The notes: generated from the letters alone by a model not told the origin. A stretch of DNA of 64,000 nt from Bugula neritina (GCA_964035545.1 OZ037766.1:19518767-19582766); one strand, 5' to 3'. Numbered from the stretch's first letter, positions 9,001-59,978 are shown. Numbers and translations are program-made.

Positions 9001-12000
9001 GTTAGCATTTTCAACTGTGCATGTTATATACAGTTGCTGTAACGTTTATAGGAGGTGAACTATTTAAAATATATGTAAATAGTAAGTGAAGACATTTTCT
9101 CTTGGCGTTTTATATAATTTTATGTTATATTTGAAGAAGTGGCCGCACCATTTCAAAATGTGATGAATATAAAAGTGAACAATTTCTTTCTTTTCTGTAG
9201 TGTTGAACGGTGTCATGCCGAAAATATTTTTAAATAGCAGAACACACTAAACAGAGCAAATACACTGACTATTAGCTTCCTAGTAATATTTCATAGTATA
9301 TTTATAGTAACTTGATACGGCATTCTAAAGCTATTTATTTTGTTTCTAGGTTTGAGGGAGACAATAAGGTTTGATGATTTATACATACAATATAAGTTGA
9401 TCACCTGTACTAAATGTTTTCTTTATATAAAACATTTAATTTATAATAGTTACTGTCTATTTAGCTCTTTGTAAGCAAATGATGCTCATTTTTATTGAAG
9501 TGACTCCATAAAGTTTTCTCAAGCAGCTAAAGGGGGGACTCTTTTAGACCTTCCTGGTGCACCTGTCATTACAGATCCTGAAACAGGTGAAAAGTCTCAG
9601 GATCTGACAGGTGTTGACGTGAAGGTATTACATACATACTGTGCATACATATGTACATACATACATACATGCATACGTACATACATACATACATACTGTA
9701 CATACATATGTACATACATACATACATACGTACGTACGTACGTACATACATACTGTACTATACATACATGTAATACATACATGTAATACATACATACATA
9801 CTGTACATACATGCATACTTACATACATGCATGTATAAGACAACTGTATGACTAGTTAATTGTTCTGTTACACCCTGTATTTCTGAGACTTATTTGTCTC
9901 CCTTTGACAGTCAAATGGTATGACTACTAACATATAAGTAACTGTATAGCCTTTGTACCAGCAATTAATGGTGTACATATTTTTTGCAGAGAATAACTGT
10001 ATCAGCCCAGCAAATAGCTGAGGCTATGCTATATCTTAGTCATCATAACATATTCACTAAGAAAATGGTGAAGGATCGTTTCATTTGGAAAAAGAGAATG
10101 CAGGCGATTTCTAATCAGGCTAAGATAACGGCAGCAGAGAATACACAAAGAGAACATCCAAAATTTCTCAAAATTATGTCTCTTACATTAAGGGTAGCTA
10201 AAAGTGAACCTGGCGCTGGTTCAAGAGCTCAGAAACCCCCGGTCTGTCTCTCCACCACCTGTCAACACAAGGTACTTTAAGAACCACTTCTCAGTGTATG
10301 ATATCTGAAACTCTATGACTTCAAGTCACATTAATTTGGTTTTAATTTAATGAATCAATTTGATTTATAGGTGCTGCACAAATTTTATTTATCATTAGCT
10401 ATTATTTCACACAAGATTGGATTACTTCTAACTATATTTCTTGCTAATAGGTGCCTAGTTTATCCGCAAAGTCTGCAGTATCAGCTAGAATTGGCAGAAC
10501 ACTAACTGGTGAGTTGATATATTTCACTAGAGCTGATCTAATCTACTTCATACTATACTCTGGCACCTTGTAGGAGAGTCTAATACTAGTCACTGAAGGC
10601 CACTTGCAGCTCATCAAATCTTCCAACTGTTTGGATCACTTGCTATCAACAATTTCAGTTTTTAGGACATAATGAATACCTTATAATATTCTTATTCACA
10701 CATAAAAATATATACAATGTTGTACCGATTTTGGATTGATTCTTATAATGTTAATTTAACAATATTAGATAATGGTGGACTGTAAAACAATTATTTTATT
10801 TGTATGTGTTTGTGTGCATTGTGTTTGTGTGTGTGTTGACTGTTGTGGCTGTGTGTATTGTGTTTGTGTGTATTGTATTGTGTTTGCGAGTTGTGGTTGT
10901 GTGTATTGTATTGTGTTTGCGAGTTGTGGCTGTGTGAACAGTGACATGCACCTACTGGCTGCCAACCTATTTATCTCGATACAGGTTGTTACTCTCCAAA
11001 AATCAAATCATCTCAATCTTACAATCTACCCTCTGCTTTTGGCAACTCCCCATCCCGTTACAAGTTGAATGCTGGAGGGGTGAGTAAAAAGAAGTTTCCT
11101 GAGACGAACAGACGGACTCCTATAAAAGCCGCTAGAAATAACTATGCTAAACCTATGCAAAAGCAAGCTAATGCTGACAGGCTTTCGGGCAGCAGTGATG
11201 AACAGTTTATTGATGGTCACTGGAAGAAAAACCCTTTCAAAAAGTACGGTGATATCAGTTAGTTGCACTTTGTTTCTATATTTTGATGAATGTTGCAAAG
11301 TAGGCTTATTTCAAATTGAATACATTGTGTTACATGAAGTTGGTTTTTTATGCATGCCAAGACCTTTATCAGTTCACTTACTTTTCATTCAGTAAACACA
11401 CACCTGGTGACTCGTAAATATTTACATCTTTATATTATCAAACCGCAACAAGGTATAAAATATTAGTAAATTTAGTAACACAAAAGTTTCAACTCTTCTC
11501 ATCACTTTACATTTAAGACATTATCAATTAATGAGTTTCCAACCATGATCATGTTTTTCTAGTTATCGGAGAGCAGGCTTTACTGGGAACATCACTTTGA
11601 TTAAATTGAGGGGCAGAAACGTGACACACAGCGATCTCTACAAACCAACACCATCTATGGAAAGCATTCTTCATCGAAGTTTTATAAGAGATAGGCTAGT
11701 AAAACCTGGTCATGTTGATGAAGTTATTTCTCTTTCTTCAAAAACGAGCTTACCTCCCATAAATCAGCCATCAACATTCAAGGCATGGTGCATGTATACT
11801 TTTTGCTATTATTTTTGTCAAGTGCAAGCTGTCCTTAGAGGATTAAAGAATATTGTGGACTTAATGTGTTGTTGTCTTCTCTTTTTATAGACAATTTATA
11901 ACATGATGAACCAAACTACCACTCAAGCAGAGTTTCTTTCTGATAAAGACTCCAGGGACCTAATTCTAGAAAAGTTTAGAGGTCGTCTGCTAAGTGAAGC

Positions 12001-23700: not shown

Positions 23701-26700
23701 ACATGTTACCCACACTGTGTGTGACATGCTATACACAGTGTGTGACATGCTATACACTGTGTGTGACATGTTATACACACTGAGTGACATGTTATACACT
23801 GTGTGTGGCATGCTATACACACTGTGTGTGGCATGCTATACACTGTGTGTGGCATGCTATACACACTGTGTGTGGCATGTTATACACTGTGTGTGACATG
23901 TTATACACTGTGTGTGTGACATACTATACACTGTGTGTGGCATACTATACACTGTGTGTGACATGCTATGCACTGTGTGTGGCATGTTATACACTGTGTG
24001 TGACATGTTATACACACTGTGTGGCATGTTATACACTGGGTGTGACATGCTATACACTGTGTGTGACATGTTATACACTGTGTGTGACATGTTATACACT
24101 GTGTGGCATACTATACACTGTGTGTGGCATACTATTACCTCTAGCTGCTGAGTGAGACTATATTTTTGAGTCAACAGCTGGTCTCTTTCCTTCTGCAGAA
24201 GGGCTTTCATACTCTTTTCCCCAGCCATGTCTCCTGCTTTTAGTTGAAGCTCCGAGTCAAATCTGTGTATAAACAGAAATGAGTAGACTACCAAGTTATA
24301 AGACATATCATGTCTTATTTACCTCCAAGTATGGTGTATACTTCTGTGCATAGTATATGATGTATAACCTACACTTCGAGTGCACAAGGAGCTTCAAAAA
24401 TACAAGAGAGGATAACTGCTTTTCTAAGATTAAATCTTCAACTTTATAGAAGGACAACTACTAAATATGATTGATTTACCTCCTTTGTCGCTTTTCTAGT
24501 TCGAAATTACGAGCCTCGCTATCCTCATATTGCCTCTTTAAATCTTGAGCCTCATTACTATATTTCTGCACTTTCTTTTTCAGATTTCCAATCACCTGCC
24601 CCTGCTCATTCTTTTCCAGTACTAATTCTTGCACCTGCCAAGAAGTTCATAACCGTCTTGCATTGCAGCTAAAATACTCAAATTTCAGCACATGATACAC
24701 TCAAAGTTGTGTTCCTTGTTTGTGAAAAAATTGATTCAAAACATGACATTTGGAAGGTTAGAAGCCACAGGCTCATTAAAAGTATACCAAGCAGAGCACA
24801 AGCTAGAAATAGACCGGCGAAAGTTAGGACCAACCTGTCTTTCTAGTTTATGCTTGGTGTGCTTGAATTCTTCTATTTCTTCTTCATGCTCAGTTTGCAG
24901 TTGTCTCCTCCTCAACTCATTCTCTTTCACCATGTGCTCGTACTTGGACTGAGTGATGAAAGAACCTGCGGGTTGAACAGTAAACACAGTATGCATTACC
25001 ACTCTGCACCAACTACGACACAAAGTGCATCTTGTAGTCTACAATTGCTGTTATGTTCTGTAGTAATATATTAAATACGTAGTTGCAAGTAAGTTGTTTA
25101 GTAACAAGTGTGTGCAAAGCTTAAACCCCAAAGTCCTGTCTGATAATTACTGATTACCTTTTCTTTGAAGTTAGCAAAGTTTCATCCATATAAACATAAT
25201 ACATACTCTTGAGCGAAAATACAATATACTATGCTATAAATGAGTGTAAGTTTAGTAGAATTTCTTGAAAATTCAATTTGACTATAGTCACAAATAAATT
25301 AAATTTAGAGATCAATAAACATGCTTAGAACAATTTTTTACATTACTTCAAAGCTTTCTTCTCTAAAAAGAAGACAACTGAAAGCTGTCCCAACCTAAAC
25401 ATAGCACTTTAGGCCTGGAAATCCATAACAGCGTCAACTGTACTGTACTGTAAATCCAATCAATAATTCTTGTTGATTCAATGCACCACCTTGAGAGCTA
25501 AAGTAAGATATACATTTTGCCATGCAAACTACTCTACCCTCCATCTGAATGATTCTACCATGTCCAAGATACATAGCTTTAGATCTACAAACTAACCATC
25601 TGGCACATCATGATGGCTCTCTTCATAACTTTCATGAACTTGTCTCAGTTCTTCATTTTCTTTCTCTAGCAATTCTATCTTTCTCTGTAGATCTTCATGA
25701 GATGCCTATGTATATAAATACTCTACACAGGTTAGCTACTTTATAATATTATATACATAAGCTCATATAACACACAAATGTTGAATGCATGCCTGTATAA
25801 AACAAAACTAGTAATAAAAATGATTGAGTGCTCAAAAAATACAAATTAGAGCATTTATATGATTTAGTGGATGCCGAAGTAGACAAATAGCTTAGCGTTG
25901 AATGACGAATGGTTAAGACTTGAAAGTAAGTTGATTTAATGGTCGTATAATAAAATAATGCAATTTCAGTATTTATAACAGAATTGGGTCTGTTGATTGA
26001 GGAAATATTTAAAACCATGCCTGTAAGAAGATGCTAGTTTGTGGATCTACTGTTTTACATTGTCTTATATTGTTCTAACAAAAGTAAATTACTAATAACT
26101 CACCACAAGGTCACTGAGCTGAGACTCTAGAGAAAGTCTGGAGGAAGTTTCCTGTTCAAGAAGTTCCACTGCCTGGCGAGAGACCTGCCTCTCCTGGACA
26201 GATTCTGACTGAAATCTAACAGCCTGAAAGACACAGCAGATATTGTTGAAAAACCTATTGCAAAAAAGTCAACGAAAATTAATGAAAAATCAATATTTTA
26301 TGCAATTGATAATGATGACATTTACTATAAGGCAAATTTTATCACTCCTCAAAAACAAATTTATTAAATTTTTTTACAAAGATAAGTTTTTTCTTAGAAT
26401 TATATAATATTCTACAAGTTCTGAGAAAATTTGTTTTCTTACCATAATAAACATTGAAATATGATTGAAAGAAAAAATACCAACTCAATATCGAGGTATA
26501 AACAGTTTTCTAGATAGAAATCCTACCTCATACATGTTTGAAACACAAAGGTGATCTACTAATAAGAAAAGCCTATCTATAGTTATTAGATGTATATATT
26601 TATGAATATTTATGTATCCTTGATTAATGTGAGAAAAACATCTTGGCTTCAGTTGAATAATCAACAGGTCATCACCATTATGCGTTGGCAATAATAAGCT

Positions 26701-29700
26701 GCAAGAATTAGCATGTAGAAATGTTACTCATTGGCTTTTCATGTATTGAAGTTACGTGACTTTGCAAAGACTCTAATGCATAGGAGGAGGCTATTTGCTG
26801 CAGTCTGCTTGGCTATAAAGATTTAAAGTAAAGGCATATTCCTACAAACAGTGAGTCTGCCGAATAGCATCTATTAAATGGCGAGATGTACCATATTCAA
26901 CATCCTACAATCATACCCTCCCCCACCTTTCTACACTCCCCTACACCTCTCTACACTCCCCTACACCTCTCTACACTCCCCTACATCTCTCTATACTCCC
27001 CTACATCTCTCTATACTCCCCTACACCTCTCTCCATTCCCCTACACCTCTCTATACTCCCCTACACCTCTCTACACTCCCCTACACCTCTCTACACTCCC
27101 CTACACCTCTCTACATTCCCCTACACCTCTCTATACTCCCCTACACCTCTCTACACTCCCCTACACCTCTCTACACTCCCCTACATCTCTCTATACTCCC
27201 CTAGAACCTCTCTACATTCCCCTACACCTCTCTATACTCCCCTACATCTCTCTATACTCCCCTACATCTCTCTATACTCCCCTACACCTCTCTCCATTCC
27301 CCTACACCTCTCTATACTCCCCTACACCTCTCTACACCTCTCTACATTCCCCTACACCTCTCTACACTCCCCTACATCTCTCTTCACTTCCCTACACCTC
27401 TCTACACTCCCCTACACCTCTCTATACTCCCCTACACCTCTCTACATTCCCCTACACCTCTCTATACTCCCCTACACCTCTCTATACTCTCCTACACCTC
27501 TCTATACTCCCCTACACCTCTCTTCACTTCCCTACACCTCTCTACACTCCCCTACACCTCTCTATACTCCCCTACACCTCTCTATACTCCCCTACACCTC
27601 TCTACACTCCCCTACATCTCTCTATACTCCCCTACACTTCCCTAAACCCTCCCAAACTTCTCTGCATTGAACATTTCAAAGTGTTGCTGAATATTCTTAA
27701 AATGTCTCAGAGCTCAAATTTTTAATATTACAAGTTTATTAAAATTTATTGATACTTTTATATTTTTGTTAATAATCTATGCCTGGTGAACAGATAATTA
27801 AGGACGAGTGAGGGGGTAGTTTCGCATCTGCTGAGAGATGCTCCCAAATATTTTTTTAGATTTCATAAGTTAAAAATTATAGTAATAACAGATAACTCTC
27901 ATGTAGCTGTATGAAGCTAAACATTTAGATATATTATAGATTGAAGTAATGCACCAATGTGCAAATCATGCCAGTGGACAAACAAATGCCTTAATGTAAC
28001 AATTTTGTCGGGAAGCATGAGTATTAGTGCAAATGCCTGATATAACCTGCATACCTCATCTTCAAACCTTGCACATTCTTTCTTGTATGCACTCCGCTCA
28101 TTTTCCACTTTTTCCAACTGGGATTTTAGTTGAAAAAGTTCTGCCTACAACGAAATATAATCTGAAAATTTAGGACATAAATTGGCAGAGTAACAGTTGT
28201 ATAACATAAAAGAAAATTGAGTTGAAAATGTTACATTTTTCTAAAAACAAAAACTTACTTATTACAGTTCTATGAAAGCTTGAAGCATGTTCATAATTGA
28301 TAAGTTTAACTAATGTGTGTAGTGTTGAAACTGCTTACTCATGTACTAACACAGGTAATCCATCTCCGAACTAAATGAATAAAATAACCAAAGATAAACA
28401 TTTCTTTACCTCTTTAGCCTTGAGAGTCTCTTCTGTCTGCTGAACGTTAACTAGAGGTTTGATTTTGGTGTACAGTTTCCACCACTGCCAGTCCTCAAGT
28501 TTAAAATTTATTCTGATGTTTTTCTGTATACATCGCATTGCTTCGTGCTTCAACTAAAATGCAATAAAACGTACAGCCCGCACATTTCAAGGTGTAGTCA
28601 ACATATTATTTGCAATGAGGACATAACTTACCTTAAGTTTTACGATAGCTTTCTGAGCCAAGTAGCGCCTGATATGCTTCTGTATGACTATGGCATACAG
28701 AGACCTTCTGAGTTCTCTAAGACGGTTGAGTTGTGCCAAAGTATCTGGCCGGATAAACACCTGACATAAAAGAGCTCAGTGTGTACTCAGCATGAGATGC
28801 TACCACCAGCTTACTATTTTATGACAACAGTGTTTGACTAGTATATTTGGATAAACAAATGTAGTTTTTGTTACTACCACTGATGGCATTAATTAAAATA
28901 GGCAAATGAAATTTACTGCAGAAGCAACTTGTGAATAAATATCATAAAACAAGTATGAGAAATAACATATACGTGACTTGATGAAGTATATGTGACTTGA
29001 TGAAATATACGTGACTTGATGAAGTATACGTGACTTGATGAAGTATATGTGACTTGATGAAGTATATGTGACTTGATGAAGTATATGTGACTTGATGAAG
29101 TGAACCAACCTGACTTAGCCCTATCCTGTACTGACTTTTATCAACACCAACTGTCGTCAGCACCTCTTCCACAACAGCTTTCTGATCCACCAGTGGCACA
29201 GAATACGAAGCGTCTTCCCCACAGAGTAAAGAGTAACGTCTTATAAACTCACTGAATGTTAGGTGTTCAGGGTACCCTAGATGCACATGAATCATAAGTC
29301 ACTTTGAGAAGAGAGATAGTTCTCATTATAAAGAATTTATTCTGGTGAAGGTGACATTCTATTATGGATACAACAGGGAAGCTTCACCATTCTCTATAAA
29401 ACAAGCTTTGAACCAAAAAGACACAAAGCTGAAAGGATATACAGACCTTGGCGATGAAATCTAACTGCAGTTAGGAGTTGCATTCCTCTGATTTGCAACC
29501 TGATGTAAGGTACATCAAGCACCATGTCACCTGTTAGAGGAACAGTACCAGCATGACTTCTCTGTCTATCTTGTGAGTTGGGAACTAAATGTATGACAAA
29601 GTGAACGGCCATCTTTGATATGTTGTCCAGCAAAGAGTCCTGCAGAAGCAAAGAAGATTGTGTCTAATTAGTAACACACCGGAAGGCATGCATTAGGAAC

Positions 29701-32700
29701 AAATGACTAGGCATATGTTCATGGCTGAGTCATTAATGATTTTTTTATAAAACATGAAATCAATATTGAGATATATTCTGATGTTTATCATGTGTTTTAA
29801 AGATGTGATATTCAAAATTTTGATATATAGTTACGTTTGTTGTATGTACTGTGTGAAAAACTAGAGTTGGACTACAGGTAAACCTATGAGCCAATAATGA
29901 AACACAAGATAATCAGCAACATTCTGGCTTTTCTTGATAGGGTGGCAGTGTATTCTCTGGGACTTTCATGAACAAATTCTTCATCATGGAGCATTGTTAA
30001 GATAAGTTGTTAAGATAAGTTGTTAAGATACATGCTCCAATGGATGACTTTAAACCATATTGGTGAATTGAGAAGTACATAGTTTGTTGGTGAGAATGAG
30101 CAAGTTTCAAGCTTTTTAACTCACCATTTGGTATTTAACAGACATAGACTGAGATTTACGCTTCAGCCCTGCTTGGTTGACATATTGACGCCTCAAACTA
30201 TTACTACGGTGTAATGTACTCATGTTGCCAGCACCACTTGTAAATGAGCTAGCTAGTGAGCTGGAGGCCGAGTTGAATAATTCAGCAATACTCGATCTGC
30301 AATGAAATGACAAGACATATTACAATACAGAGCGTACTAATCATTTTTATGCACATTACATTGACCACTCATGAAACAACGATTTAGTGCCAAAGGAGCT
30401 GGCTTTCTCTACATAGAAATAATGACCTAATTATTGCTGTTAAAGCAATAATAACAAACACTTGCTGACTGTAGGCTGAGTCAGCGTCTTTTTAGTAACA
30501 ACTTAAAATTAAAACATTCGCAGCACATGTTAGAGCAAAATTCCGATAGCATCACGTACCGCTTACGCTGCCAGCAATTTGCACAACCTAAAGCATTCAT
30601 ATTGCACTTGACGATGTAATTGAGGGGAATTCAAACTGTTAAACTTTCAAAATTAAAATACCTGTAAGATACAACACTGTGGAACTACCTTTCACAAGGC
30701 ATTTCCTAGCAAGATGAGACAACTTTTAAAAGAATTTATCAAAATAAAATTATCGAGTAAATGCTTCTTTAACTATTTTCCACAAAAGCTGTCTTAGTTT
30801 TAGCTTTCTGTGGTGCTGCTAACTTTTATGTTGATAGTGAACACAAATTTTATGACAATATACATCTAAGTGTCTAATTGTTTCAGTTAAATGTGAACAA
30901 TTTTTTAACATTGATATAATTATATTACTATTTTATAATGATATCTGTTGTTGATATAATTTTTATTTTATTAGATTTATTGGCAGCACTAATTTTTTTT
31001 ACAGCCATGAATCTTTATCTATGAATATTATTACAATATTGTTACAATACAACAATTTAAATGCTTATCAGTTATAAAAAATAGCTATAAACAAATTTAT
31101 AAAATATTCCATCCTTATTATTTTTGCTTCAACTGTATATCTCATTAATGACTAATACCATATTATAATTATATTATAATAATAATGTCCACATTTTACT
31201 ACTAACCACATAACTGTTAGCAATAATAGTGATACTACCACGGGCACCAAAAGTAATGTTTGTAAGTTATAATAGTATCAGCAGTAGAAGCGCAAAACTA
31301 GTGCTAGGATTTTAGCATAATATTTCTACAACAGCAGCTGGTGTAGAAATATCCTGCTAAAATCCTAGTACTAGTTTTACTAGCTTTTCATATAGACAAT
31401 AAAATAATTGCTGTGTTGTGACGAGGGAAGGAGGAACAAGCAAGTCCTCAACAAACAACTTTCATTCAACTCAGAAATTTACTGCTTGCTTGTGATTCGA
31501 AACTGAAACTACAGACCCTGCAGTTTCCACCTTTGAGTAACAAAGAAATAGTGGAGTTATGCCCTCCTATGATTACATACTTTTGACTAGACTGTAGTAG
31601 ACCCGCAGCTTGCTCAGTATTGCTGTACAGTCTGCAGGTTTTCAACCAGCCAGCACACTGGTAGGTGACTTGTGCTGTGCCATAGTAGTGATTCAATGAA
31701 AAGAGAGAAGGATGGTGAGGGTGGAGAGTTAAGAGCTTCTCACCTGTCAAATATATTGCAAAGAATAAAGCAGTTATCCAGATGGTTGCAATTCTGGCTA
31801 TATTAGCATCACCTGAAACTTGCGGTGACAGTGTAGGCCTATCATACTAGTAGCCAACAGCTGTAGAAAGTAATGAATACCTTCCATGGGGTTTAAATCA
31901 ACCAATAAAAAGAAAAGAAAGATAAAGACAGGTTTGCAATATGTTTTACATATTGATAGGGAATAAACACTAACTAACCTCAATAGCTGAATAACATTGG
32001 ACAAACTATAACCTTATATATTCAACATCATATGGATTATACCACAGACAAAAACCCTCCAATAGTTTATTTTATACAAGGTTTTAAATGTTAAACTCAA
32101 AGTAAAAATGTATTTAATATTTACATGAGGTATGGGATGGGTATGGTGTATCAAAAGATTTGCCAATAACAGTTTTTTTATAAATTGAAAATGGGTCTTT
32201 ACAATATCTTTAGATCTCAGCAATACCGAGGTAATAACTTTTAGTAGCAGCATAGCAGAAGTCATGTTATGTCATATTTCAACTTGAATTTTAAAATAAA
32301 GGTATGCTGTGACCAGAGTCAACTCTGCCAGGGCATAAATTCCACTCGAATGCACCTGCTCTCTATATTTAGAAAGCGCTATAGTCTATACAATCACACT
32401 AACTCGTATACTTACACTGCACCATTGTAAACTCACACTGCATTATTATATACTTACACTACAATGCTGTACACTTACACTACAATGCTGTATACTTACA
32501 CTAAAATTTTGCATATTTACACTACAATGCTGTACACTTACACTACGATGCTGTATATTTACATTACAATGCTGTATACTTACACTACAATGCTGTACAC
32601 TTACACTACAATGCTGTACACTTACACTACAATGCTGTACACTTACACTACAATGCTGTATACTTACACAACAATGCTGTACACTTACACTACAATGCTG

Positions 32701-35700
32701 TATACGTACACTACAATGCTGTACACTTACAGTACGATGCTGTACACTTACACTGATCTACAGCTCTCCCATGAGCCAAGTCTACTTTGTCTAAGAACTG
32801 CTCCTCAGTAGCACCTGGTGTCATAGACATTTGATCGAGTATCCAAAACAGTCCGAGATCTGCACTCTCATCTCTGCCCAGCAGACTGAGATCTATTCGG
32901 CTGTTTGCACTTCCTGTTCCTTGTAACTGAAATGATACGATATCCTTGTAACTGAAATGATATGGTATACTGTATCATAGGTCGTGTGAATAGTGGTTTT
33001 AAAATGGTGTGTGTTGCATTTATAGAACCACCTTCAGCAATAGATGTCGGTGCTTGACATGTGCTACTAAGTGGTGAACATGTGCTACACAGGTGCTAGA
33101 CAGGTGGCGCTGGACATGGTTATTTATGCATCACTCATGCCCAGGTTTCCTTGTTTCACAAACCATTATCGGCTTCCACAGAACATTACTGCACACACAC
33201 ATTGAAATAATAAGATCTTCATACCAGCTGTTGCTGATTGGATGGTTTGTCAAGCAGCTTCACCATTGCTTCTGGACGATCAGTGAAATCATCAAGTTCT
33301 ACTTCAATGTTCTCCTGTAGGTAGAAGAACAGCACTATGATATTTGAAGCAGATGCACTGCCTGTACTAGTTATTTCTAAAAGGCTAAATACATTTACCA
33401 CTACCGCTGTGTAAAAGCTATTTTACAATAAAGTAGTCGTTTTCCCTTGCATAATTTCTCAAGCTAAACTGATAATAGTGAACATGAAAAGCTCAGGGAT
33501 TGCATCGATTTGAGAACTGGCAGGTAATATTTCAGGTTACATAGTTTAGTTTAGTTTAGTTCATACACAGTTGATCATATACTGAGGTTTTCTTTAAAAC
33601 ACTTAATTATTATACTTGAAAGAAATGCATTCAAGGTAAAAGTTTTAAAACTTAACTACTTTGGAAAATGACCGAAATAAGCATTACAATATTCAAAGAG
33701 CAGTGTGAAACTAACGTATATTTTGCTAATCAAGTGAAAACTAATTACTAAAGCCAAATTAAGCTTCAAAAGTTGAACAAAGTCAAATACAGTTGAGCAC
33801 ATGAACCTGGGAGAGCGGCGCAGAGCACTTGGGAGGTGTCATACTACAGCATAGTGTAGGCTAGATGCTTATACTGGGTAAGCAAATTACATGCTAAGCG
33901 GTGAAGTGTTACAAGTAACTCAGAACAACCCACCTGTATGTAACGTTCTTTGTTCTCAGTAAATATCTTCTCATAAAAGAGAAGTTGTATTCTCTCATTG
34001 ATGTAGTTGTAGCAGAGGTGATTGAAGGTGGCTGGTTGAGAGGTGCTGTCTCTGAAGCCAGGTGTGTCTAGTATGATAATAGAAGTACAGTTCCTCGTCA
34101 CAGTTGAGAGGTTCCTGCATAGTGTAGAGAAATTTCCATATCAAACAAGTGAATAAACAACACAACTATTCATAGAGAAATACATTTGAATTGAAATATT
34201 GTGGAATAGTGAAATATATATAAAAGGTGATTGACCAAAAAAGTAGGTGAATACAAAGGTAAGCAATAAAGTTTAAACTTTTGGATGAAAAGAAAAAATA
34301 GAAATAGTTTAGACTTTAAAATAAAAGTATCCCTCACTAGAAAAACTTCTCTTCAATATAAAATATCAACACTGAGCATGAATGCAGCTATACATTAAGA
34401 TTTTCATCTTAATAAGATGATAAACAACTTCAATGACTCATTACAACTAATAGGCAGCAATAATACAAATAAAATTAGCATGAATTGGAGTGAACTCACA
34501 TAATTCAAATTTTATTTTCCAGAAACACGGGAAAGAACTAAAAAAAGGTGGTCTATTAGCAGCAGAATTTACAGTTATAACCAACATGTTTATTAGATAT
34601 AACCAACATGTTTATTAGATATAACCAACCTGTCTATTAGATATAACCAACCTGTTTATTAGATATAACCAACCTGTCTATTAGATATAACCAACCTGTT
34701 TATTAGATATAACCAACCTGTTTACTAGATACAACCAACCTGTTTATTAGATACACAACCAGAGTGAAGAGTTGAGTGTAGATACCAACAATGAATTCTT
34801 CCAGAGCATCTGCACCTCCAGAAAGAGTTTCTTCTACAGCAGAGGGTCTACAAAAGTTATATAAGTTATTAAATAACTGAGTAGATAGTCCAATAGGTAG
34901 TCCAGTATATAGTCTAGTAGGTAGTCCAGCAGGTAGTTTAGTAGATAGTCTAGTATATAATCCAGTTGATAGTCCAGTATATAGTCTACTAGGTAGTCCA
35001 GTAGATAGTCTAGTAGGTAGTCCAGCAGATAGTCCAGCAGATGGTCCAGCAGGTAGTCTAGTTGATAGTCTAGTAGGTAGTCCAGTAGGTAATCCAGTAC
35101 ATAGTCTACTAGGTAGTTTACTAGGTAGTCTAGTAGGTAGTCTAGTAGGATATCAGATGCTTTTGATATCATGTATTGCTGCTTATAGAAATTGTATTTA
35201 CAAAAAAGGGTTGAAAAAATCAAACATAAATACTATTCTTGAGCAGAAAACATAAAACTATATTTACTGAATGATATAACATTGAAACTGCTTTTAAACT
35301 CTGTAGCTTTATGATCTCACACAGTGGACGTGTGGAAGAGAAACATGAAGCACTGGTACTAAAAACAATATGTAATGAATAAATGCATCTATGTAGTATA
35401 AAAGGGTGCAAATGATGTTAGAAGTTAAAATCTTGGTTTTAAGAAACTGAAGCATAGTCATATTTTTAAATGTAGCCAACTCTAAGAAAAAGACGGTTCA
35501 AATAGAAAATAATGTTTAGAAAGAACAAGTTAGGGACAATTCTCTATGAAATGTAGGGATGTGGATTATAACTAGAGCAAGACAGATGTGAAAGGCAACT
35601 CAATTACTTTATTTTGATGGCAGCAGCTTGATAAATAGTGAGAAAATCTATTATTTGCTGTGGAAGTGTTAGGCCATGCCTGTAAGCTGTCGCTAGTAAT

Positions 35701-41600: not shown

Positions 41601-44600
41601 AAGCTTTGTCTGCAAGTAGACTTAAAGTAGTAATGTAATACTGCGCAGTAGTAAATTACTATATTGGTTAGGAGTTATCATGACAGTTGATGATGCCAGC
41701 TGCCCAGTTGAGAATGAAGAAGGCTGTCCAAACCCATGGCAGAGCAGTTATTGTTGTGAATATAATTTGTCTGGGAATGATGCATTTATGAGAGTAATTA
41801 GTGAATCAACCTTTTCTATATCACTCAGAGTGATGTACATAATGTCAAGCAGCCAACAAAACACATTTTGCTACTCACTTCTTCAACTGTCTGTTTACAG
41901 TGGGACATTCTGGCTTTTGAAAATACAAACTTGAGAGACACCTTTTGATGACACCATTAAAAATTTAAAATATAATTTATGCTATTGGGATGACACCATC
42001 TACAATATTTCGTGGAAATGTGCCAATATGCTCAGGTCTTTACTCCACACTCTATCACGTGAAATAAGCAAGACATTGCAAGGGTTTTATGGTCAAATCT
42101 TTTATTGTGTCTATGTTGAATATTCAATGAAGAACCTGCAGTTTACACGAGAGTGCTTTACTTAAACAAATGTACATCTGCAGCTTCAACTGTGGAAATT
42201 AGAAATAATTTTATTGGAAAATTGACACTAATTGGTGCAAATGCTAGATTTCAGCACTGGAATTCAAATACTCTCTATGGTAGCTATGTACTATTGACAG
42301 TAATATTTGCTATGTTTAAATAGAGGTACGAAGAAAGTCAACCATATAAAGGTAACATATGCATGTAAGTAATGAGTAGAGAGTGTCACCTAGAGTAGGC
42401 AGATAACCTGTGATTAACAGTGCATCACATAATGATATTTCAACTGTCACTACTACTGCAAGTCTATTAGAATTGAAAAGTAGTGAAGGCTGGTGCTTAG
42501 TTTGCTTCCCTTGTTTAGACACGTAGTGAAGATATTTCAAACATTTCATAACCTATATTCCACATTTTATTCAAGTTCACAGCAATACACCATAAGTCGC
42601 CACCACAGCCTCACTTATAAGTAAAAATTCTGAATTGCTGGCTTGCCAGTCGAGTGTAGAATTTCATATTTTTGATCAGTAAATTGTCAGCATTGAATAT
42701 ACAACTGCTGGTAATAATTAATCATCTATTTGGCTGTTGATACCTTCTCTGTAGTAGTAGTACATAGTATATAATACTACTAGTCAGTACATAGTACTAC
42801 TAGTCAGTACATAATACTACTAGTCAGTACATAGTACTACTAGTCAGTACATAATACTACTAGTCAGTACATAGTACTACTAGTCAGTACATAATACTAC
42901 TAGTCAGTACATAGTACTACTAGTCAGTACATAGTACTACTAGTTAGTAAATATAGTACTAGTCAGTAAATATAGTACTAGTCAACAAATATAGTGCTAG
43001 TTAACATATATAGTGTTAGTTAACATATATAGTGTTAGTTAACATATATAGTGTTAGTTAACATATATAGTGTTAGTTAACATATATTGTGTAAGTTAAC
43101 ATATATAGTGCTAGCCAACGAATTCAGCATAAGCCAGCAAAAATTTTGCCCAAAATTGTGGCCTGTTTTTAAAATATTATGCTGAAAAAGTTATAAAAAC
43201 TTGCTTTGCAGACTTACATTCAATAAATCTATTTGCTGACTAATCTATTTGCTGACTAATCTATTTGCTGACTAATCTATCACATTACATATTTGGAGTT
43301 TCTGGACTAACAACTTGTAATGTAACTTTGGAAATATTTTTGATCTTCTGTGATTAAAGGCTGACACACCAGATTTCAGAGCCCAGATCTTATAGTATCC
43401 ACGTTGAATTACTATTTGCCTACTATATGTCCAAATTAAAAATAAACCTTGTACTAAAAATCGGCTGTGGAAAATGCAGTAGTAGAAAAAAAGCCTAGCA
43501 TGACTACATTATTTTCTATTTCAAACTATGATTAATGGTTGATGCTGTTATCTAAAATGTTGACTTTATATCAGAGATTATTATACCAAGTAGCTATCTA
43601 GTAGAACAGGAATGTGACCCGGGTCTGATTATACTTAGTGTACTGTCAATAAGAAGACTTAGCCCCTTGATTAGGTCAATGTGTGGCTGGGTATAAATTA
43701 CTACTTCTAGTTTAACTTGGATGTCTTAAACAACAAAGTTGCAGTCAATTTTGTATGTGAATTTAGTATTATTAGATATAAAAAATGATAAAAACTTACA
43801 TCTCCATTGTTATTGACTTTAAACTCAGGAGAGTTGTTGACATACGGTGCAGTTACAGGTGGATTGGCACGACGGTGAAGTTCGCTGACTCCTACTAACT
43901 GCTGAACTACCAGATTCAGAGGGTCAGGTGACTGCTGTATCCATGCGATCACTACATCTCGAGAACATTCTTCCACATTTTTACCATTTATCTCCACAAT
44001 TCTGTCCCCAGCAATCACACCAGATTTGCTACCAGAAGACCCAGGTTCAGCATGCACTGCGTGGTGTGTGACTCCTGTAGCTACATTGGTGTATGGAGCC
44101 CATCTTAAATTGAAACCAAAGTCCCCTGTCGGCTGACGTGATATGACTAGTCTGCGAGTTTCCATTGGAGGAGGAGGAGTTATGGAAGGTAACTCCAAAT
44201 CAACATCATACACTTTTTCAGTAGCAGATGCAGGTGGGGGGACACTGGGAGGTGCTATGTTCATCGTTATACTGTGAATAGATTCCCGCTTTTTCCGATC
44301 AACCAGATGGGATGATTTGGTATCAGGAGATGTCCGCCAAGCAAACTCCTCGTTGATCCGCGTGTTTTGTCTCAATAACTCAGCTTCATCTAAATTACTG
44401 GGAGGTGCATTCTGAGTTTTATGTTTGCTAGAGCCACGGATTTTTAGAATACCCCGGGATACGGCTGATGACTTGCCCCCATTCTTGGAGCTCACACTTG
44501 AAGAACCAAAGGGAGCATTCTTACTGGATTTAGTAGTTAAGGGAGAGGTAAGCTGACTATACCTTGGTTCCCCCAACTCATTATCATATCCAGATATAGA

Positions 44601-44690
44601 ATCCCGAGATTTCTTTTCTTTTTTCGAATCTTTTCTCTCTTTTTTTTTGTCATCAGACTTTGTTTTATCCTTTCGTCCGAACTTGAACAT
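14701..44690 (-). CDS. MYO18A: Unconventional myosin-XVIII (MYO18A-like; KE-rich + PDZ + motor + IQ + coiled-coil tail), ~1887 aa, 32 coding exons
   Basis: complement(join 43800-44690, 41356-41532, 39548-39724, 38038-38248, 37584-37726, 37041-37202, 36549-36693, 36124-36262, 34740-34847, 33934-34114, 33225-33314, 32752-32926, 31581-31743, 30125-30296, 29447-29639, 29110-29276, 28632-28760, 28410-28553, 28055-28144, 26104-26223, 25597-25705, 24835-24965, 24480-24634, 24139-24262, 22017-22217, 19004-19238, 18473-18600, 18104-18334, 17404-17625, 16492-16677, 16276-16397, 14701-14743). All introns GT-AG, phases consistent, total 5664 nt. Class-18 hallmarks: [41 protein letters not shown] switch [15 protein letters not shown]. 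Confidence 0.95.
15436..15462 (-). CDS. Candidate 27-nt frame-preserving micro-exon of MYO18
   Basis: gatacag|GGATGAAATGGAAGATATAGACCACCG|gtaaag; phase 2-2, adds DEMEDIDHR. Confidence 0.55.
17970..18060. repeat. Short 20-22-bp minisatellite (gagatggtgtataggactga), ~4 units
   Basis: Visible tandem units ~45 nt from the donor at 18103. Confidence 0.85.
23690..24134. repeat. ~20-22-bp minisatellite (acactgtgtgtgacatgttat)
   Basis: About 20 variable units, abutting the myosin donor at 24138. Confidence 0.95.
26925..27643. repeat. 20-bp minisatellite (CTACACCTCTCTACACTCCC), ~35 units
   Basis: Clear 20-bp period, almost G-free on +; GGGG run every 20 nt on the - (myosin sense) strand. Confidence 0.97.
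28410..28760 (-). CDS. MYO18A: MYO18 neck exons (28632-28760, 28410-28553) with IQ motifs
   Basis: [13 protein letters not shown] and [28 protein letters not shown]. Confidence 0.92.
28966..29101. repeat. 19-bp minisatellite (GTGACTTGATGAAGTATAT), ~7 units
   Basis: Tandem units begin ~8 nt into the intron after the donor at 29109. Confidence 0.93.
31294..31378. repeat. 85-bp near-perfect palindrome / hairpin
   Basis: 42-nt arms aaaactagtgctaggattttagcataatatttctacaacagc / gctggtgtagaaatatcctgctaaaatcctagtactagtttt, 4 mismatches. Confidence 0.9.
32410..32754. repeat. 21-bp minisatellite (ACTTACACTACAATGCTGTAC) containing the splice donor
   Basis: About 16 units; the - strand unit carries T|GTAAGT and the first unit is the true donor at 32751. 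Confidence 0.95.
33934..34114 (-). CDS. MYO18A: MYO18 exon containing switch II / relay helix
   Basis: [13 protein letters not shown]...[22 protein letters not shown]...ERYIQ. Confidence 0.95.
34577..34753. repeat. 22-bp minisatellite (ATAACCAACCTGTTTATTAGAT), 8 units, spanning the exon/intron junction
   Basis: The - strand unit ATCTAATAAACAG|GTTGGTTAT is the exon end (YLINR) plus the donor. Confidence 0.95.
34878..35150. repeat. 12-bp minisatellite (TAGTCCAGTAGG-like)
   Basis: About 22 units, ~30 nt from the acceptor at 34848; explains the LLDY-repeat ORF. Confidence 0.93.
37584..37726 (-). CDS. MYO18A: MYO18 exon containing switch I (absent from ORF track)
   Basis: [48 protein letters not shown] aligns by eye to myosin LEAFGNAKT..NxNSSRFG. 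Confidence 0.92.
38038..38248 (-). CDS. MYO18A: MYO18 exon containing the P-loop
   Basis: ELPPHVYS...[16 protein letters not shown]; tttcag| and |gtaagt. Confidence 0.95.
38575..38700. repeat. (TA)n microsatellite with AT-rich and (TATG)n flanks
   Basis: Pure (TA) run of ~70 nt at ~38608-38676. Confidence 0.97.
39348..39512. repeat. 31-bp minisatellite with internal palindrome GTCACTGTGAC, ~5 units
   Basis: agtcactgtgactatcactttgagctaagcg repeated. Confidence 0.9.
39548..39724 (-). CDS. MYO18A: MYO18 exon: start of motor domain
   Basis: [49 protein letters not shown]; ttacag| acceptor, |gttggc donor. Confidence 0.95.
41879..41908 (-). CDS. Candidate alternative start or cassette exon of MYO18 ([10 protein letters not shown])
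   Basis: ATG TCC CAC TGT AAA CAG ACA GTT GAA GAA|GTGAGT; the phase-0 donor is compatible with the acceptor at 41532. Confidence 0.45.
42755..43112. repeat. Compound minisatellite: 20-bp TAGTCAGTACATAGTACTAC grading into 19-bp TAGTGTTAGTTAACATATA
   Basis: Visible tandem units with transitional units at ~42940-43000. Confidence 0.93.
43800..44690 (-). CDS. MYO18A: MYO18 first coding exon: KE-rich N-terminus and PDZ domain
   Basis: [27 protein letters not shown]...[18 protein letters not shown]...[17 protein letters not shown]. Ends GAT|GTAAGT (phase 0). A candidate acceptor just 5' of 44748 suggests a non-coding exon further upstream. Confidence 0.93.
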
Positions 44691-47000: not shown

Positions 47001-48025
47001 TCATCTGTATCTGTAAGAAGTAGATCCTGCAGCAGATCCCGTAGGACCATCGTGCAAGCCTCGGAGATCAACGAGTTACTATAATGGCAACCAGCAAATT
47101 ATATATACTTTTTTTTCCTTTTTCTTCTCTTTTTTAATTTTTTCAATGTATAAAGCAAAATAAAATGTATTGATGTAGAGATCTATTAAAAGAAAGCAAT
47201 GGTAGGGACGCTCAATGGGAACAAAAGTGAGCAGTCTGCTCAACACCAACTTCAAGTCTAATGTCCCTGATTCTTCTAGGGAGGAAACTATGATGAAATG
47301 GGCCGGGATTTGAAGAGAGTGATGTTACCAATCCCTGTGACTGAAAACACGTAGTTACATTAGTATTTACAAGATTTGTGTTCTCTTCCAAGAATTTAGT
47401 GAAAATCTCTATCGGGCTACTAACCATTTTCTTGTAGAGCTTTACTCTCAACTCCCTACGACGGACTTCCAGAGTGCTGAGGCCTAATTTTTCTCGGGCC
47501 TCTGACACACTGTCAGTACGGCCTTTTAAGTTTCCTATAAATCGGATAGCCAGATTTTGAACTCCCTCAATTTTATTTATAAGTTTTTGTGTATAAGGGC
47601 AAAATACCTGGCACCCATACTCAAGTATGGGGTGGCATAGGGAAGTGAAAGCAAGTAATTTTGTTTTACGCGGCGAGTTTGATAGTGTTCGCCTTATCAA
47701 CCCCAGAACCTGAGAGGCCTTTTTAACTTTTTGCTCTATATGTTTGTCAAACTTTAGATTATTTTGTATAATGACGCCTAGATATTTGGCCTCTTCAACC
47801 TCACTAACTTTTTCTCCTGCGAGAGTGTAGATACCATTCAAATTTGGTCTTTTAGAGAAGATCATTAGTTTGGTCTTTTTAATATTGAAACTCATGCCCC
47901 ATTTTATAGACCATTCATATATGTTGTTTATGTCCTTTTGAAAACTTTCAAAGTCACTTGAGTTATTTACAGATGTAAAAATGATGGTATCATCTGCAAA
48001 TAAACTAACATTACAGGAGAGGCAA
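47001..48025 (-). mobile_element. 5'-truncated LINE (CR1/L2-group, Crack/Daphne-like) with intact RT C-terminal ORF 47212-~48025
   Basis: LFADDTIIF...FQKDINNIYEWSIKWGMSFNIKKTKLM...KYLGVII...LKFDKHI...PILEYG...IEGVQNLAIRFI. About 200-nt 3' UTR ending in tacagatacaga. The start Met comes from flanking low-complexity DNA. Confidence 0.9.
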
Positions 48026-48959
48026 TCATAATTCATAATGGTTATCATTATCACTTAATCATTGTGATTAGTAAGTGTCAACTTACAACTAATAACATTG
48101 ACTATCACTATAACAGTAACTACTACCATAACTTATAACTATAACATTAACTATAAGCATTATTAACAGTATTCGTATTACTATTAGTATTACTTTTGTA
48201 TAAGTCACAACATTAAATTTAACTCATAAAATAAAGAGAGGATTAAGACTTACTCTATTACTATTTCTATTAGTCAATGTAATATAGTATTTGTACATAT
48301 TTTTAAGGACTAAAGTTAGAGTAAAACTAACAGTAACTGTAAGGACTTTGACTAACTTAAAGAGTGAAAGTAAAGCTTTTAGTCTTACTCTTATTAACTT
48401 ATAGTTATACTATTACATTTAGTTTTACTATTACTATGATTATCACTATCATCGTGATGGTAAATGTAATAGTATAGTGACTATGAGTATGACTATCATT
48501 ATCAAAGTATCAACATCGTGATCATTATGACTATGATTATCATTATGATCATAGGACTAAGTTAAATTATTATAATTTAAATTATATTATTATTAACTTT
48601 ATATTTATTGAATTTTCAATTACATTTAGTTTTAATTTTAGTTTTACAAATTTTTAATATAACATTAACTAACAGTAATACTAATACTAATAGTAATACT
48701 AATGTATAACATTATGATTATCATTATGTAATTAACTATAATATTATTATTAATATTATTAATATTATAATCACTACGTTTACAGTTTATTAGTAGACAG
48801 TTACTTTTACTATTCGTATTAGCTATTACTATAAAATTTAGACTATTAGTGAATTACTATGAGTATTACTATCAGTATGTGTGCGCATCACTATCAGCGT
48901 GAGTATCAGTACCGTACAGTGAGTATCAATATGAATATGAGCATGGTCTACTTCTGGTA

Positions 48960-56467: not shown

Positions 56468-57245
56468 CAGGGTTCGGGTAATTGATGTTTGTGGTTGCAA
56501 TTGGTTGCAATTAATTACATTTTTCCAAATAATTGAATGTAATTTGTAATTGAAGTATAAAACTGCAATTGTAATTTACCACATATCAGGGCGGGGTCAA
56601 TTACATGTGAATGTAATTAATTGCAATTACATAAAAATTTATCAATTACAATTATAATTGCAGTTAAAAAGTAATGTAATTAATTACAATTACAATCACT
56701 TTTGTTCTCACAAGGAATAAAAAGAAGTTATGTAATCTCACTTCTAGGGTCCAACTACCAGGGGCAATTTTGTCAGTGGTGAACCTACTTTGTTCCCAAC
56801 AGTGATACTATACCACATGGACTCAATGAACTTGTTATTTAGCAGTAGGCATGGTAGGAAAAGTATGAATCTTTTAAGATTTTAAAATTTGAAGTAATTG
56901 ACATGTAATTATAAAGTAATTGTAAAAACCAATTGCATTAGATATGTAATTAGTTACAATTACAATTACATTTTTATACATTCATGCAAATACTTGAAAA
57001 AATTAACTAATTACAACCAATTACAATTACAAATTACAACTACCCCAACCCTGATATCTAGAGTAATTGATTTTTACAATTACTTTGTAACCACATATTA
57101 ATTACTTCAAATTTCTAAATCTTTCATAATTCTCTTACCATGGTTACTGTGTAATAAAAATTTCAGATTAATTCAATGCAGTATTATTGTTATATTGTAT
57201 CACCTTATTAATAATGTTAAAAGAAACAGATGAGTTGTTCACCAA
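56468..57245. mobile_element. CAGGG-terminated non-autonomous element with a second copy (56587-57053) inserted in the opposite orientation
   Basis: Inner copy cagggcggggtcaattac...caactaccccaaccctg is flanked by ATAT on both sides, with GTAATT/AATTAC subterminal repeats. Outer segments match the reverse complement of the inner copy. Confidence 0.75.
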
Positions 57246-57474
57246 TATCAGATGAGCTACCGTAAATTTTTAGAATACAAATAGTTAATTGTGAATTTCG
57301 TTGAACTCCAAGTTGTACTAGTTGTATTAACATATTGTTCTGTACGCAGTTTTATGGCACCCTAAGCTAATGTGAGAAAGGCCATATGGTAGCTTACAAA
57401 TCTTTTATAATCTTTGCAAATCTTAGCTTTTATCCTTTGCTAGTAAAAAGTCTGTAATGCATTCAATTTTAAAG

Positions 57475-58623
57475 ATGAAACTCCATTTAGCTCTTTTAAT
57501 AACAACTTGCTTAGTCGTCGGGGTAAGTATTTCAAAATCTAGAATAGCAGCTGCCTGCTCAGCAGGTAAGAAGCTGTAAAGTATCTACTTTTTATGTACT
57601 TAGGCTGGTGTATCAAAACAGGAAGAACAAAAAGTGAACATGGTTTCTTATTCTTTAAATGCTATAAGCTATGTTTCTGATATGGTTTTGGGCACAAAGT
57701 GTAGATTTCACTACAAGGATTAATCCTGCCTCAATCTAAGCTTGCTATCATTTAGGCAAAGGGTAATATTGTAACCTTTTCAGTTGTTTAAGCTTATGCT
57801 TACAATATTGTTTTTTAGGGATTTCAGTCTCCCAATAGCTAATTCTTGGGTAGCTTTTCTTTTTAAATGAAACCCTGCAGTTAAAATAACTTTTTTTTAA
57901 CTGAAAGGAAAATCCTATTGCATTTACATTCAATAAGTAAATACATTTGTAGTGTTTTTGAGCCTCATGAAGAGTGAAAACTATACGCAAGTTTATAGTT
58001 GCCATCCCTGTGAGAAAACCCCTGATGGGAAGGGTTTTTTTTCTTAAACCGGGCTAAGGTCTTACTATACAGATGAGGCATGGGAGCAATTATAACTATA
58101 TGCTCTTCCTAACATCACCAATGACCTTTGTTGAGGTTCAAACCCATGACTTCGTGCTTACTAGGCGACACTTTGACCCCTAGGCCAAGGCTGCTCTAAA
58201 TATTCTTAGCATTAGTTACAAGCTACATCAGTGCTGTTGAAAATCTTGATGCTGCCCCTTAGCTGTATCAAAAGTGTAAGAATTTGGGTTTTTGCAATAT
58301 TATCGAAGTTTAATTGTCCAATGATAATTTATAATAAATTGTTGATAGGTTCACAAAAATATAGAAACTAAATAAAAATTACATTGATGAGATAAACACT
58401 ATAATATGCAGACTAATATATTATGCTTTCTTAGACAGCTGCTGACTTCAAACATTGTTTAGAAGATAAAGAATGTGACGTCACAGAATGCTGCCACCAT
58501 GATAGAGCTGTAGGGGTTTGTGTGAGCAGAAAGACTTATGGTCAGCTTTGTGACTGCGGCTGTGAGAAAAATCTGATGTGCTCAATGACAACTGGCAAAT
58601 GTGAATATGTTTTCAAAGGCTAA
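57475..58623 (+). CDS. Secreted 10-cysteine colipase/prokineticin(MIT/astakine)-like peptide precursor, 78 aa; join(57475-57522, 58435-58623)
   Basis: Exon 1 MKLHLALLITTCLVVG|GTAAGT. Exon 2 ttcttag|TAADFKHCLEDKECDVTECCHHDRAVGVCVSRKTYGQLCDCGCEKNLMCSMTTGKCEYVFKG*. Phase-0 join; signal-peptide-like N-terminus; C-x5-C-x4-CC...G..C...CxC...L.C pattern. Confidence 0.85.
57991..58194 (-). mobile_element. tRNA-derived SINE, antisense in the peptide gene intron
   Basis: - strand: A-box-like TGGCCTAGGGG, B-box-like GGTTTGAACCTC, then a body shared with 93-275. Confidence 0.65.
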
Positions 58624-59978
58624 CTTATAATACAATCTGCCTGTGTTGTAGCAAATTTATAAAGAAAATGTAATAGTTTATTCAATACATACACCACATA
58701 AATTTTCTCCTTCTTCTATTGGTTGATGTATAGAGTTACATAACGTAGGTGTTTACAATTATATCAATGTTAAGTATATATTATTACTTTTAACTACTGA
58801 TTTTAGCACATTGAATGAGTAATGTTTTAATTTATATTTTCCCATGTAGTCCCATACAATACTGCACATAAACATATGTAAGTCAGAAATTTAAGAGCGT
58901 TTGTCAAAAAGGTGAATTCCTGCAATTCCATCATAATCTAGAAGTAACATCCAATTATCTTTCACTCATTACACTCCGAGGGTGGACCACACAACTTTTT
59001 AGAAATCGAGAGGTTCAAGGGCCCTAATTAATCTGTGAAAACTTTAAGTTGTTCTGTGCGCCCAGTAAGCCACAACAATTTTTAATAAACTTTTAACATA
59101 AATCAGGAGTTGTCTTTTCTTAACGTTTGTTTGAATCGGTCAACTATCTTAGAATTATTTTATCTAATTTATTTTATATATGCAAAAGAAATTTAAGATG
59201 ATTATAGATGCTTTTCTCATTTATTGTTGTAAAAGCTTAAGACTGCTCTGTCCACCCAGTTACCCAGTTATGTTCAGGAGATCACACAAACATTAATTCT
59301 AAGTATTACTTTGGCCAATAGGTGTTCTGCCCACCCAAATAGCCAAAAAGGCTCTTCAAATTTTTTCGGGAGTTGTTTTCTTTTCATTTTGTTTAAATCA
59401 GTTGAATGTCTGAAAGTTATATAAGGTAGTTTATTATATATACATGGTAAAACTTCTGCAGATGATATAGAGACATTGTTCACTTTCCTGAGTTAAATTT
59501 TTGTGACTTTCTTCTGACAGCGTCTGAAGGAAAGTTGAGCATCCACAAAACAAAGCAAGAGACTGGGTTTGTTTTAGAAATTGGTGAGCATTATTATTAA
59601 TTAGCTGTAAAAATGTTTATAAATATAGGTGAATGAATGTCTGATAATGATTTTCTTCACGACTTTAAACATCCTAACTACTTTTACAAAAAAGTAATGA
59701 GAAGCATGAGCAGGTTGGTCTGGATTGTAAAGGATAATATTTTAAGTTTGTACATTTGAGCTTTACTAACAAATTTAAATTGAACTACATGTATATGTTC
59801 TATAAGCAATGTTTTTAAAACAATGCTGTTGGTTAAAATGCATACTTTTTATACTATTTCAATAATGACTTCAGAGCAAAGATGGCTTAATAAAATGTGC
59901 AGCTTTTCCCACAAAAAATGAAATTATGCTGCACATAAAATATTTATCGGACAGCTGTGGTGTTGAGTTTACCCAGCA

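Follow-up and report, generated by a model that had tools for sequence, protein, structure and literature searches.

The window analysed here, a 64,000-nucleotide stretch of Bugula neritina DNA (G000:C2:19518767-19582766, from an assembly of 216 Mb with ~33% G+C), probably carries a real, single-copy, two-exon gene for a secreted five-disulfide peptide, most likely an endogenous hormone- or cytokine-like ligand of a lineage-restricted family. In the mechanism we propose, the start codon and the signal peptide's hydrophobic core would come from exon 1, a phase-0 intron of 912 nt would be spliced out, and exon 2 would supply the signal-peptidase site (..T-A-A/D, the slash marking the predicted cut) together with a peptide of 59 residues. 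Its ten cysteines would most likely pair into five disulfides. After secretion, the terminal Gly would perhaps be converted to a C-terminal Lys-amide, and the product would most likely act as an extracellular ligand.

Sequence inspection of the window places all elements of the gene on the + strand (Table 1). Exon 1 encodes Met-Lys followed by a 13-residue, mostly hydrophobic run, and its codons stop exactly 5' of the donor GTAAGT at 57523. Translation could start at either of two in-frame ATG codons, one at 57457 (G at -3) and one at 57475 (A at -3). The acceptor consists of a pyrimidine tract and AG (..GCTTTCTTAG, last base 58434). Its TAG is an in-frame stop, and exon 2 has no in-frame ATG 5' of the first cysteine. 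Hence, the frame of exon 2 would be translatable only once spliced to an upstream start. The predicted mature peptide begins with DFKH, directly after the predicted signal and with no propeptide before the first cysteine. Its cysteines are spaced 5,4,0,8,9,1,1,5,6, and it is mildly acidic (10 acidic and 8 basic residues, 3 His). Its calculated average mass is 6658.6 Da, from which ~6648.5 Da is expected with five disulfides and ~6590.5 Da for the des-Gly amide. This anatomy had been described in an earlier note on the same DNA, as a hydrophobic exon with a GTAAGT donor joined in phase to a start-less exon of 62 codons, giving 59 residues after Thr-Ala-Ala with this ten-cysteine spacing, a terminal Gly, and neither an AVIT N-terminus nor an RGD motif. 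Inspection and translation bear out each of these points.

Table 1. Features of the window, by position (nucleotides counted from its first letter).
Feature	Position	Strand	Remarks
24-bp satellite	2907-6920		Consensus CAACTCTCCTCTCACTTATTCTAC, 167 copies, 94% match
TGT/TGC-rich tandem repeats	9631-9855, 10769-11065, 23702-24152, 32339-32791	one or both	13-17 Cys per 55 residues
Myosin-18-like gene	23800-44700	-	Pfam matches
Possible coiled-coil tail, myosin-18-like gene	23857-24306	-	Weak match, E 0.003, below Pfam cut-off
Myosin motor end, myosin-18-like gene	28942-29295	-	
PDZ-containing exon, myosin-18-like gene	43707-44690	-	
Reverse-transcriptase fragment	47212-48054	-	RVT_1, E 5e-9; between myosin and peptide genes
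Further high-copy repeats	56507-57148, 58861-59074		Word depth
Possible N-terminal extension MHSILK	57457-57474	+	6 codons from in-frame upstream ATG; alternative start
Candidate exon 1	57475-57522	+	Start codon and predicted signal-peptide n-/h-regions, 16 codons (MKLHLALLITTCLVVG)
Predicted intron	57523-58434	+	Phase-0, 912 nt, GTAAGT donor to TTTCTTAG acceptor
SINE-like dispersed repeat	57977-58197		~210 bp, within peptide-gene intron
Exon 2	58435-58623	+	62 codons and TAA stop; predicted signal-peptide end (T-A-A) and whole mature peptide
Predicted mature peptide	58444-58620	+	59 aa, 10 Cys, pI 5.8, C-terminal Gly (possible amide donor)

The choice of exon 1 was examined with a scan for mini-ORFs that open with ATG, run for 12-32 codons up to a phase-0 GTRAGT donor, and encode a hydrophobic core of ten residues. 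Both strands of the 64 kb (128 kb of strand) gave a single match, which was exon 1. When any GT was accepted as donor, it ranked first of 18 candidates in the 6.4 kb upstream, and the runners-up had weaker donors and lay at least 3.7 kb away. Inspection found the features of a signal peptide, i.e., an n-region that carries a Lys, a hydrophobic core whose best 10-residue Kyte-Doolittle mean is 2.7, and small residues at -3/-1. From the (-3,-1) rule and an AAD conserved in a second species (see below), we infer that the precursor is cleaved after AA/D. A search for sequencing runs holding the locus returned no RNA run. The sole holder found was a genomic DNA run, X1, in which exon 1 is unchanged and whose contigs span both exon borders without a joint. 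The frame of exon 2 is under selection and lacks a start of its own, so an upstream exon is required. The use of the proposed exon 1 thus has strong circumstantial support, and the peptide is very probably secreted.

The search for orthologues called for in the earlier note gave one relative. When 1.84 billion representative proteins were searched exhaustively by HMMER with the exon 2 peptide, exactly one matched, P0001 (58 aa, E 3.1e-21, 67% amino acid identity). Its coding sequence lies on two Logan contigs of another species, L002 and L003 (runs SRR25569782 and SRR25569789). Contamination by the same species was considered as a source of these contigs and is excluded by the 29% nucleotide divergence. 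Conservation of the cysteines in related species had been named beforehand as a test of the peptide, and all ten are kept in P0001, with all nine spacings. The kept blocks include CCHHDRAVGVC, CDCGC.KNLMC, CEY.FKG-stop, and the AAD before the mature part. The predicted mature peptides have equal lengths, cysteine spacings and charge counts in the two species. They begin with DFKH in the window and DMKH in L002, and the predicted cleavage regions read T-A-A/D and V-A-A/D, respectively. The stop after the terminal Gly is also kept, with a different codon (TAA in the window vs TGA in the other species), and the peptide may be amidated by way of this conserved Gly-stop ending.

At the DNA level, similarity (71%) is confined to positions 248-431 of L002, corresponding to 58438-58621 of the window, and ends at the exon borders. 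The flanks and intron DNA of L002 could not be aligned with the window, and a search for synteny with the L002 flanks in the window's own genome gave no match. At the corresponding position L002 shows an acceptor too, with TAG behind a stretch of pyrimidines (..TTCCTTCTGTAG), and the alignment indicates that the acceptor position of exon 2 is conserved across both species. We looked for an exon with a start and a signal in the 241 nt upstream of the L002/L003 acceptor, where the contig ends, and found none. Extending these contigs upstream through a neighbouring called gene led to the same two contigs again. In the second species exon 2 itself begins with ATG, and it is formally conceivable that translation starts there and yields a product with no signal peptide.

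The mode of evolution of exon 2 is that expected of a coding sequence. Nei-Gojobori counting between the window and L002 gave pN 0.20 and pS 0.70, i.e., an omega (dN/dS) of ~0.12, with dS ~2 and synonymous sites therefore saturated. The 53 differences fall 12/10/31 on the three codon positions (chi-square p 0.0005), and both other forward frames contain stops. Variants within each species follow the same pattern. Between X1 and the window, exon 2 has four differences, all at third positions (three synonymous, one Glu to Asp), and L002 and L003 differ in the exon by a single synonymous third-position change. All five within-species variants are thus at third codon positions, with four synonymous and one Glu to Asp. 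Because of the conservation in a second species, the low omega, the third-position excess and the variant pattern, exon 2 is a protein-coding exon under purifying selection.

One side observation concerns the distribution of variants around the exon. In the 738-nt X1 contig (58140-58877), the exon holds four of the five differences from the window within its 189 nt, against one in the 549 nt of flank (Fisher p 0.017). Chance may account for this excess, since other parts of the region also have clustered variants. Alternatively, it could be the trace of old haplotypes at exon 2.

Two segments outside the cysteines stand out as the obvious candidate functional sites. One is the fully conserved hairpin loop His-His-Asp-Arg that joins Cys4 to Cys5, and the other is a dibasic pair kept in the loop between Cys5 and Cys6 (Ser-Arg-Lys at 58525-58533 of the window, Pro-Arg-Arg at 335-343 of L002). 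The dibasic pair might form a basic patch for receptor contact, or it might be cleaved by a convertase to give a two-chain, disulfide-linked peptide.

We found no paralogues in the window's own genome with protein and profile searches (best other match E 0.44). The weak genome matches were translated and judged to be noise. One of them (G000:C2:20795335-20795406, with ..CCHERQVGYC.. and a TGA) was rejected as a paralogue because its alignment was unconvincing. The gene is therefore single-copy. Other searches reached further. No near-identical product of exon 2 was found in a collection of 15 billion proteins, and of the 62 pattern matches from a scan of JGI metagenomes, tblastn confirmed none. 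A word-index protein search was blank with exon 2 and returned only P0001 with the two-sequence alignment. Such a blank is weak evidence for short cysteine-rich peptides, since P0001 was missed despite nine 5-residue words in common with exon 2 (our own count on the alignment). The peptides of both species matched no family in Pfam-A by hmmscan at E up to 10, and all PDB sequences, searched with a profile at the same E limit, were likewise without a match. Its motifs were absent from the 8.4 million papers searched and from the supplements examined of the lophotrochozoan neuropeptide survey. By sequence, the peptide falls in no described family, and we conclude that it represents a new, lineage-restricted family of cysteine-rich peptides, previously unrecorded. 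The earlier note's claim of an unannotated gene for a compact cysteine-rich peptide is thus supported by the gene anatomy and by conservation in a second species.

Toxin and antimicrobial families are typically multi-copy and cationic, with fast-evolving mature parts. The peptide described here is single-copy and mildly acidic, and its mature region evolves slowly. On this account an endogenous ligand that is secreted, and possibly amidated, seems to us more likely than a toxin or an antimicrobial. The earlier note had left a toxin, a cytokine and a defence peptide side by side. Single-copy status, strong purifying selection and a pI of 5.8 make the toxin and defence options less likely, and the cytokine-like option stands. 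A role as a protease inhibitor or in other forms of defence is the main rival to the ligand role.

The surroundings of the gene are rich in repeats. The SINE-like repeat in the intron had 2979 candidate copies in a first look at the genome. Of these, 39 other copies were scored and are 81-85% identical, and its word depth is ~1000 times that of its flanks. ARAGORN called no tRNA in it. Together with the flanking high-copy repeats and the reverse-transcriptase fragment, it confirms that the gene sits in a transposon-rich spacer, as had been proposed. The nearest recognisable gene that we found upstream is the myosin-18-like gene. The window contains 290 open stretches of at least 50 codons, and exon 2 is the only non-repetitive frame with at least 10 Cys in 55 residues. 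All others are translations of the TGT/TGC-rich tandem repeats, which are false positives for scans of cysteine-rich peptides. The core of the 24-bp satellite has a GC skew on the + strand down to -1.0, with G absent from 4001-6000, and the satellite gives rise to a spurious ORF on each strand, of 1372 and 1355 aa.

These surroundings raise the question of whether exon 2 is anything other than an open frame that arose by chance, a pseudogene or a functionless fragment carried by a transposon. Besides the repeats around it and the lack of an RNA run among those found with the locus, a rough composition estimate gives a few expected non-repetitive ten-cysteine frames in an AT-rich genome of 216 Mb. 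Against this stand a conserved island in a second species between flanks that cannot be aligned, an omega of 0.12 with a third-position excess (p 0.0005), the conservation of all cysteines and of both exon 2 borders, and the stops that interrupt the other two forward frames. The transposon version fails because the gene is single-copy. The explanation as a whole is scarcely credible, and the chance-ORF and pseudogene readings of exon 2 are effectively excluded. A different possibility makes exon 2 the terminal exon of a gene that is larger or starts differently, and that would use other upstream exons, another signal exon or further domains. The conserved acceptor stop and the stop after Gly fix the 3' exon only, the stretch upstream of the L002/L003 acceptor shows no counterpart of exon 1, and the run holding the locus is genomic. 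Yet no second signal-like ATG..GTRAGT mini-ORF exists in the 128 kb of strand, exon 1 has the strand and phase required and is 912 nt upstream, and the other candidates have weaker donors at distances of at least 3.7 kb. Furthermore, the conserved AAD that opens exon 2 looks like a signal-peptide c-region. We thus hold a different upstream gene structure to be distinctly improbable.

The remaining alternatives keep the gene model and concern the fold of its product. AlphaFold2 gave poor models, with a pLDDT of 60.9 from the single sequence and 62.8 from the two-sequence alignment. A Foldseek search of the PDB with such a model found nothing at an E of 0.001 or better. The weak list that it returned for this poor model is headed by MIT1 (1imt, E 1.8, rmsd 9.6) and Dkk1 (E 2.5), with draxin and other Dkk chains. 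The best VIA-align score of the peptide model among 48,161 chains was a Z of 2.6. When applied to Foldseek's list, VIA-align gave Z of at least 2 only for knottins, over residues 2-37, and less than 2 for MIT1 and Dkk. The knottin rows (MCoTI-II, EETI-II, Magi4 and the scorpion KTx lambda-MeuKTx-1) have Z 2.0-2.2, which is in the chance range. In an Atlas shape search, a Dkk4-like protein (TM 0.53), ixodegrin (0.48) and prokineticin (0.46) appeared amid unrelated bacterial proteins, none of them significant. For both species, the nearest neighbours in a protein language model were spider ICK toxins (Toxin_12, diguetoxin, omega-atracotoxin) and Dickkopf_N, at 0.80-0.83, values that shuffled sequences often reach. 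It is doubtful, if worth serious consideration, that the peptide is a knottin-type defence peptide, inhibitor or toxin, with Cys1-6 forming an ICK and a two-disulfide C-terminal extension, and not a colipase-fold ligand. The spacing of its first six cysteines fits what we take to be the general ICK pattern, and the language-model and VIA-align results point the same way. By the calibration of the tools themselves, none of these scores rises above chance, and the gene is single-copy. Its mature part evolves slowly (omega 0.12), and the pI of 5.8 argues against a cationic antimicrobial. The colipase/prokineticin fold, as the earlier note stated it, is not established either, as Pfam and the PDB were blank, pLDDT was 61-63, Foldseek E values exceeded 1, and VIA-align Z was below 2. 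A more specific version, in which the peptide is a minimised colipase-fold ligand on a bryozoan-lineage branch of the prokineticins and astakines, with the 17-residue Cys6-Cys7 loop deleted (C-D-C-G-C), a C-terminal amide, and a hormone or cytokine function through an as yet unnamed receptor, seems to us improbable. As for topology alone, a colipase-type arrangement is unlikely but deserves a hearing, and so does a knottin plus extension. Otherwise the peptide would have an unclassified disulfide-rich fold. Whichever fold applies, a secreted ligand encoded by two exons is our preferred reading; the number and pairing of its disulfides are predictions from the ten cysteines.

These results show that a conserved and selected peptide gene can escape both ORF lists and gene callers, as among 15 billion proteins it is recorded only once, by a 58-aa unnamed ORF in another species. 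The set of peptide hormones described so far in bryozoans is small (PMC4990251), and bryozoan biology would gain a candidate signalling or defence peptide that is open to synthesis and testing. Peptide engineering could find in it a compact five-disulfide scaffold under either reading of the fold. If the colipase-fold reading were true, the 59-residue form would reveal what the prokineticin/Dickkopf scaffold can do without, and a minimised ligand of this kind would be the smallest natural version of the colipase fold. If the peptide instead represents a new orphan cysteine-rich family, its annotation would be useful and unsurprising. Prokineticin-like peptides have been reported across nearly all lophotrochozoan phyla (PMC6425005). 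Given these reports, and since members of the superfamily that lack AVIT are known, a bryozoan peptide of the prokineticin superfamily would not be new in kind. A 59-residue form with a one-residue Cys6-Cys7 loop would be a new variant.

The inhibitor cystine knot is one of three known systems with which the peptide can be compared. Its first six cysteines (C-5-C-4-CC-8-C-9-C) could form such a knot, the core of which pairs C1-C4, C2-C5 and C3-C6, but knot peptides have six to eight cysteines whereas this one has ten. Its C4-C5 loop is longer than is usual for knottins, and no family HMM matches it. The C-terminal domain of Dickkopf and colipase are, like the peptide, small ten-cysteine domains with five disulfides. 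Dkk chains are among the weak structural rows (3s8v_X at E 2.5, 3s2k_C and 5o57), which are below significance and mixed with other folds. The Dkk domain is part of a larger protein, whereas the peptide is free-standing and has no Pfam match. In the colipase fold the cysteines pair C1-C4, C2-C5, C3-C7, C6-C9 and C8-C10.

Cysteine-anchored inspection shows a real resemblance to MIT1, whose sequence has cysteine spacings of 5,4,0,11,9,17,1,5,9 (PMC8859281). The ten cysteines are in the same order in both (C-C-CC-C-C-C-C-C-C), and six of the nine spacings are identical: C1-C2 of 5, C2-C3 of 4, the adjacent C3C4, C5-C6 of 9, C7-x-C8, and C8-C9 of 5. Beyond the cysteines, the two share Asn-Leu at matching places between C8 and C9, and Gly as residue 7 between C5 and C6. 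The remaining three loops of the peptide are the smaller ones (8 vs 11 for C4-C5, 1 vs 17 for C6-C7, 6 vs 9 for C9-C10), and it has 59 residues against ~80 in the prokineticin/AVIT family. The framework comparison of the earlier note therefore stands, with six spacings as in MIT1 and the C6-C7 loop reduced from 17 residues to one. The peptide's cysteine framework looks like the prokineticin/colipase type with three loops shortened. Like the peptide as predicted, members of the prokineticin/AVIT family are small secreted peptides that directly follow the signal peptide. To our knowledge, a terminal Gly that could signal amidation is not a feature of this family. The curated cut-off of PF06607 is 21.6 bits, which the peptide of neither species reached, as neither had any Pfam match at E up to 10. 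With this profile test failed and the fold test undecided, we do not file the peptide as a prokineticin. The AVITGA N-terminus of the AVIT family, which is required for receptor activation (PMC7020442, PMC8859281), is absent from the peptide, as its DFKH and the DMKH of L002 show. The lack of AVIT excludes only the AVIT subgroup, because relatives that also lack it are known, i.e., the astakines and the MIT-like peptides of spiders (PMC3303826).
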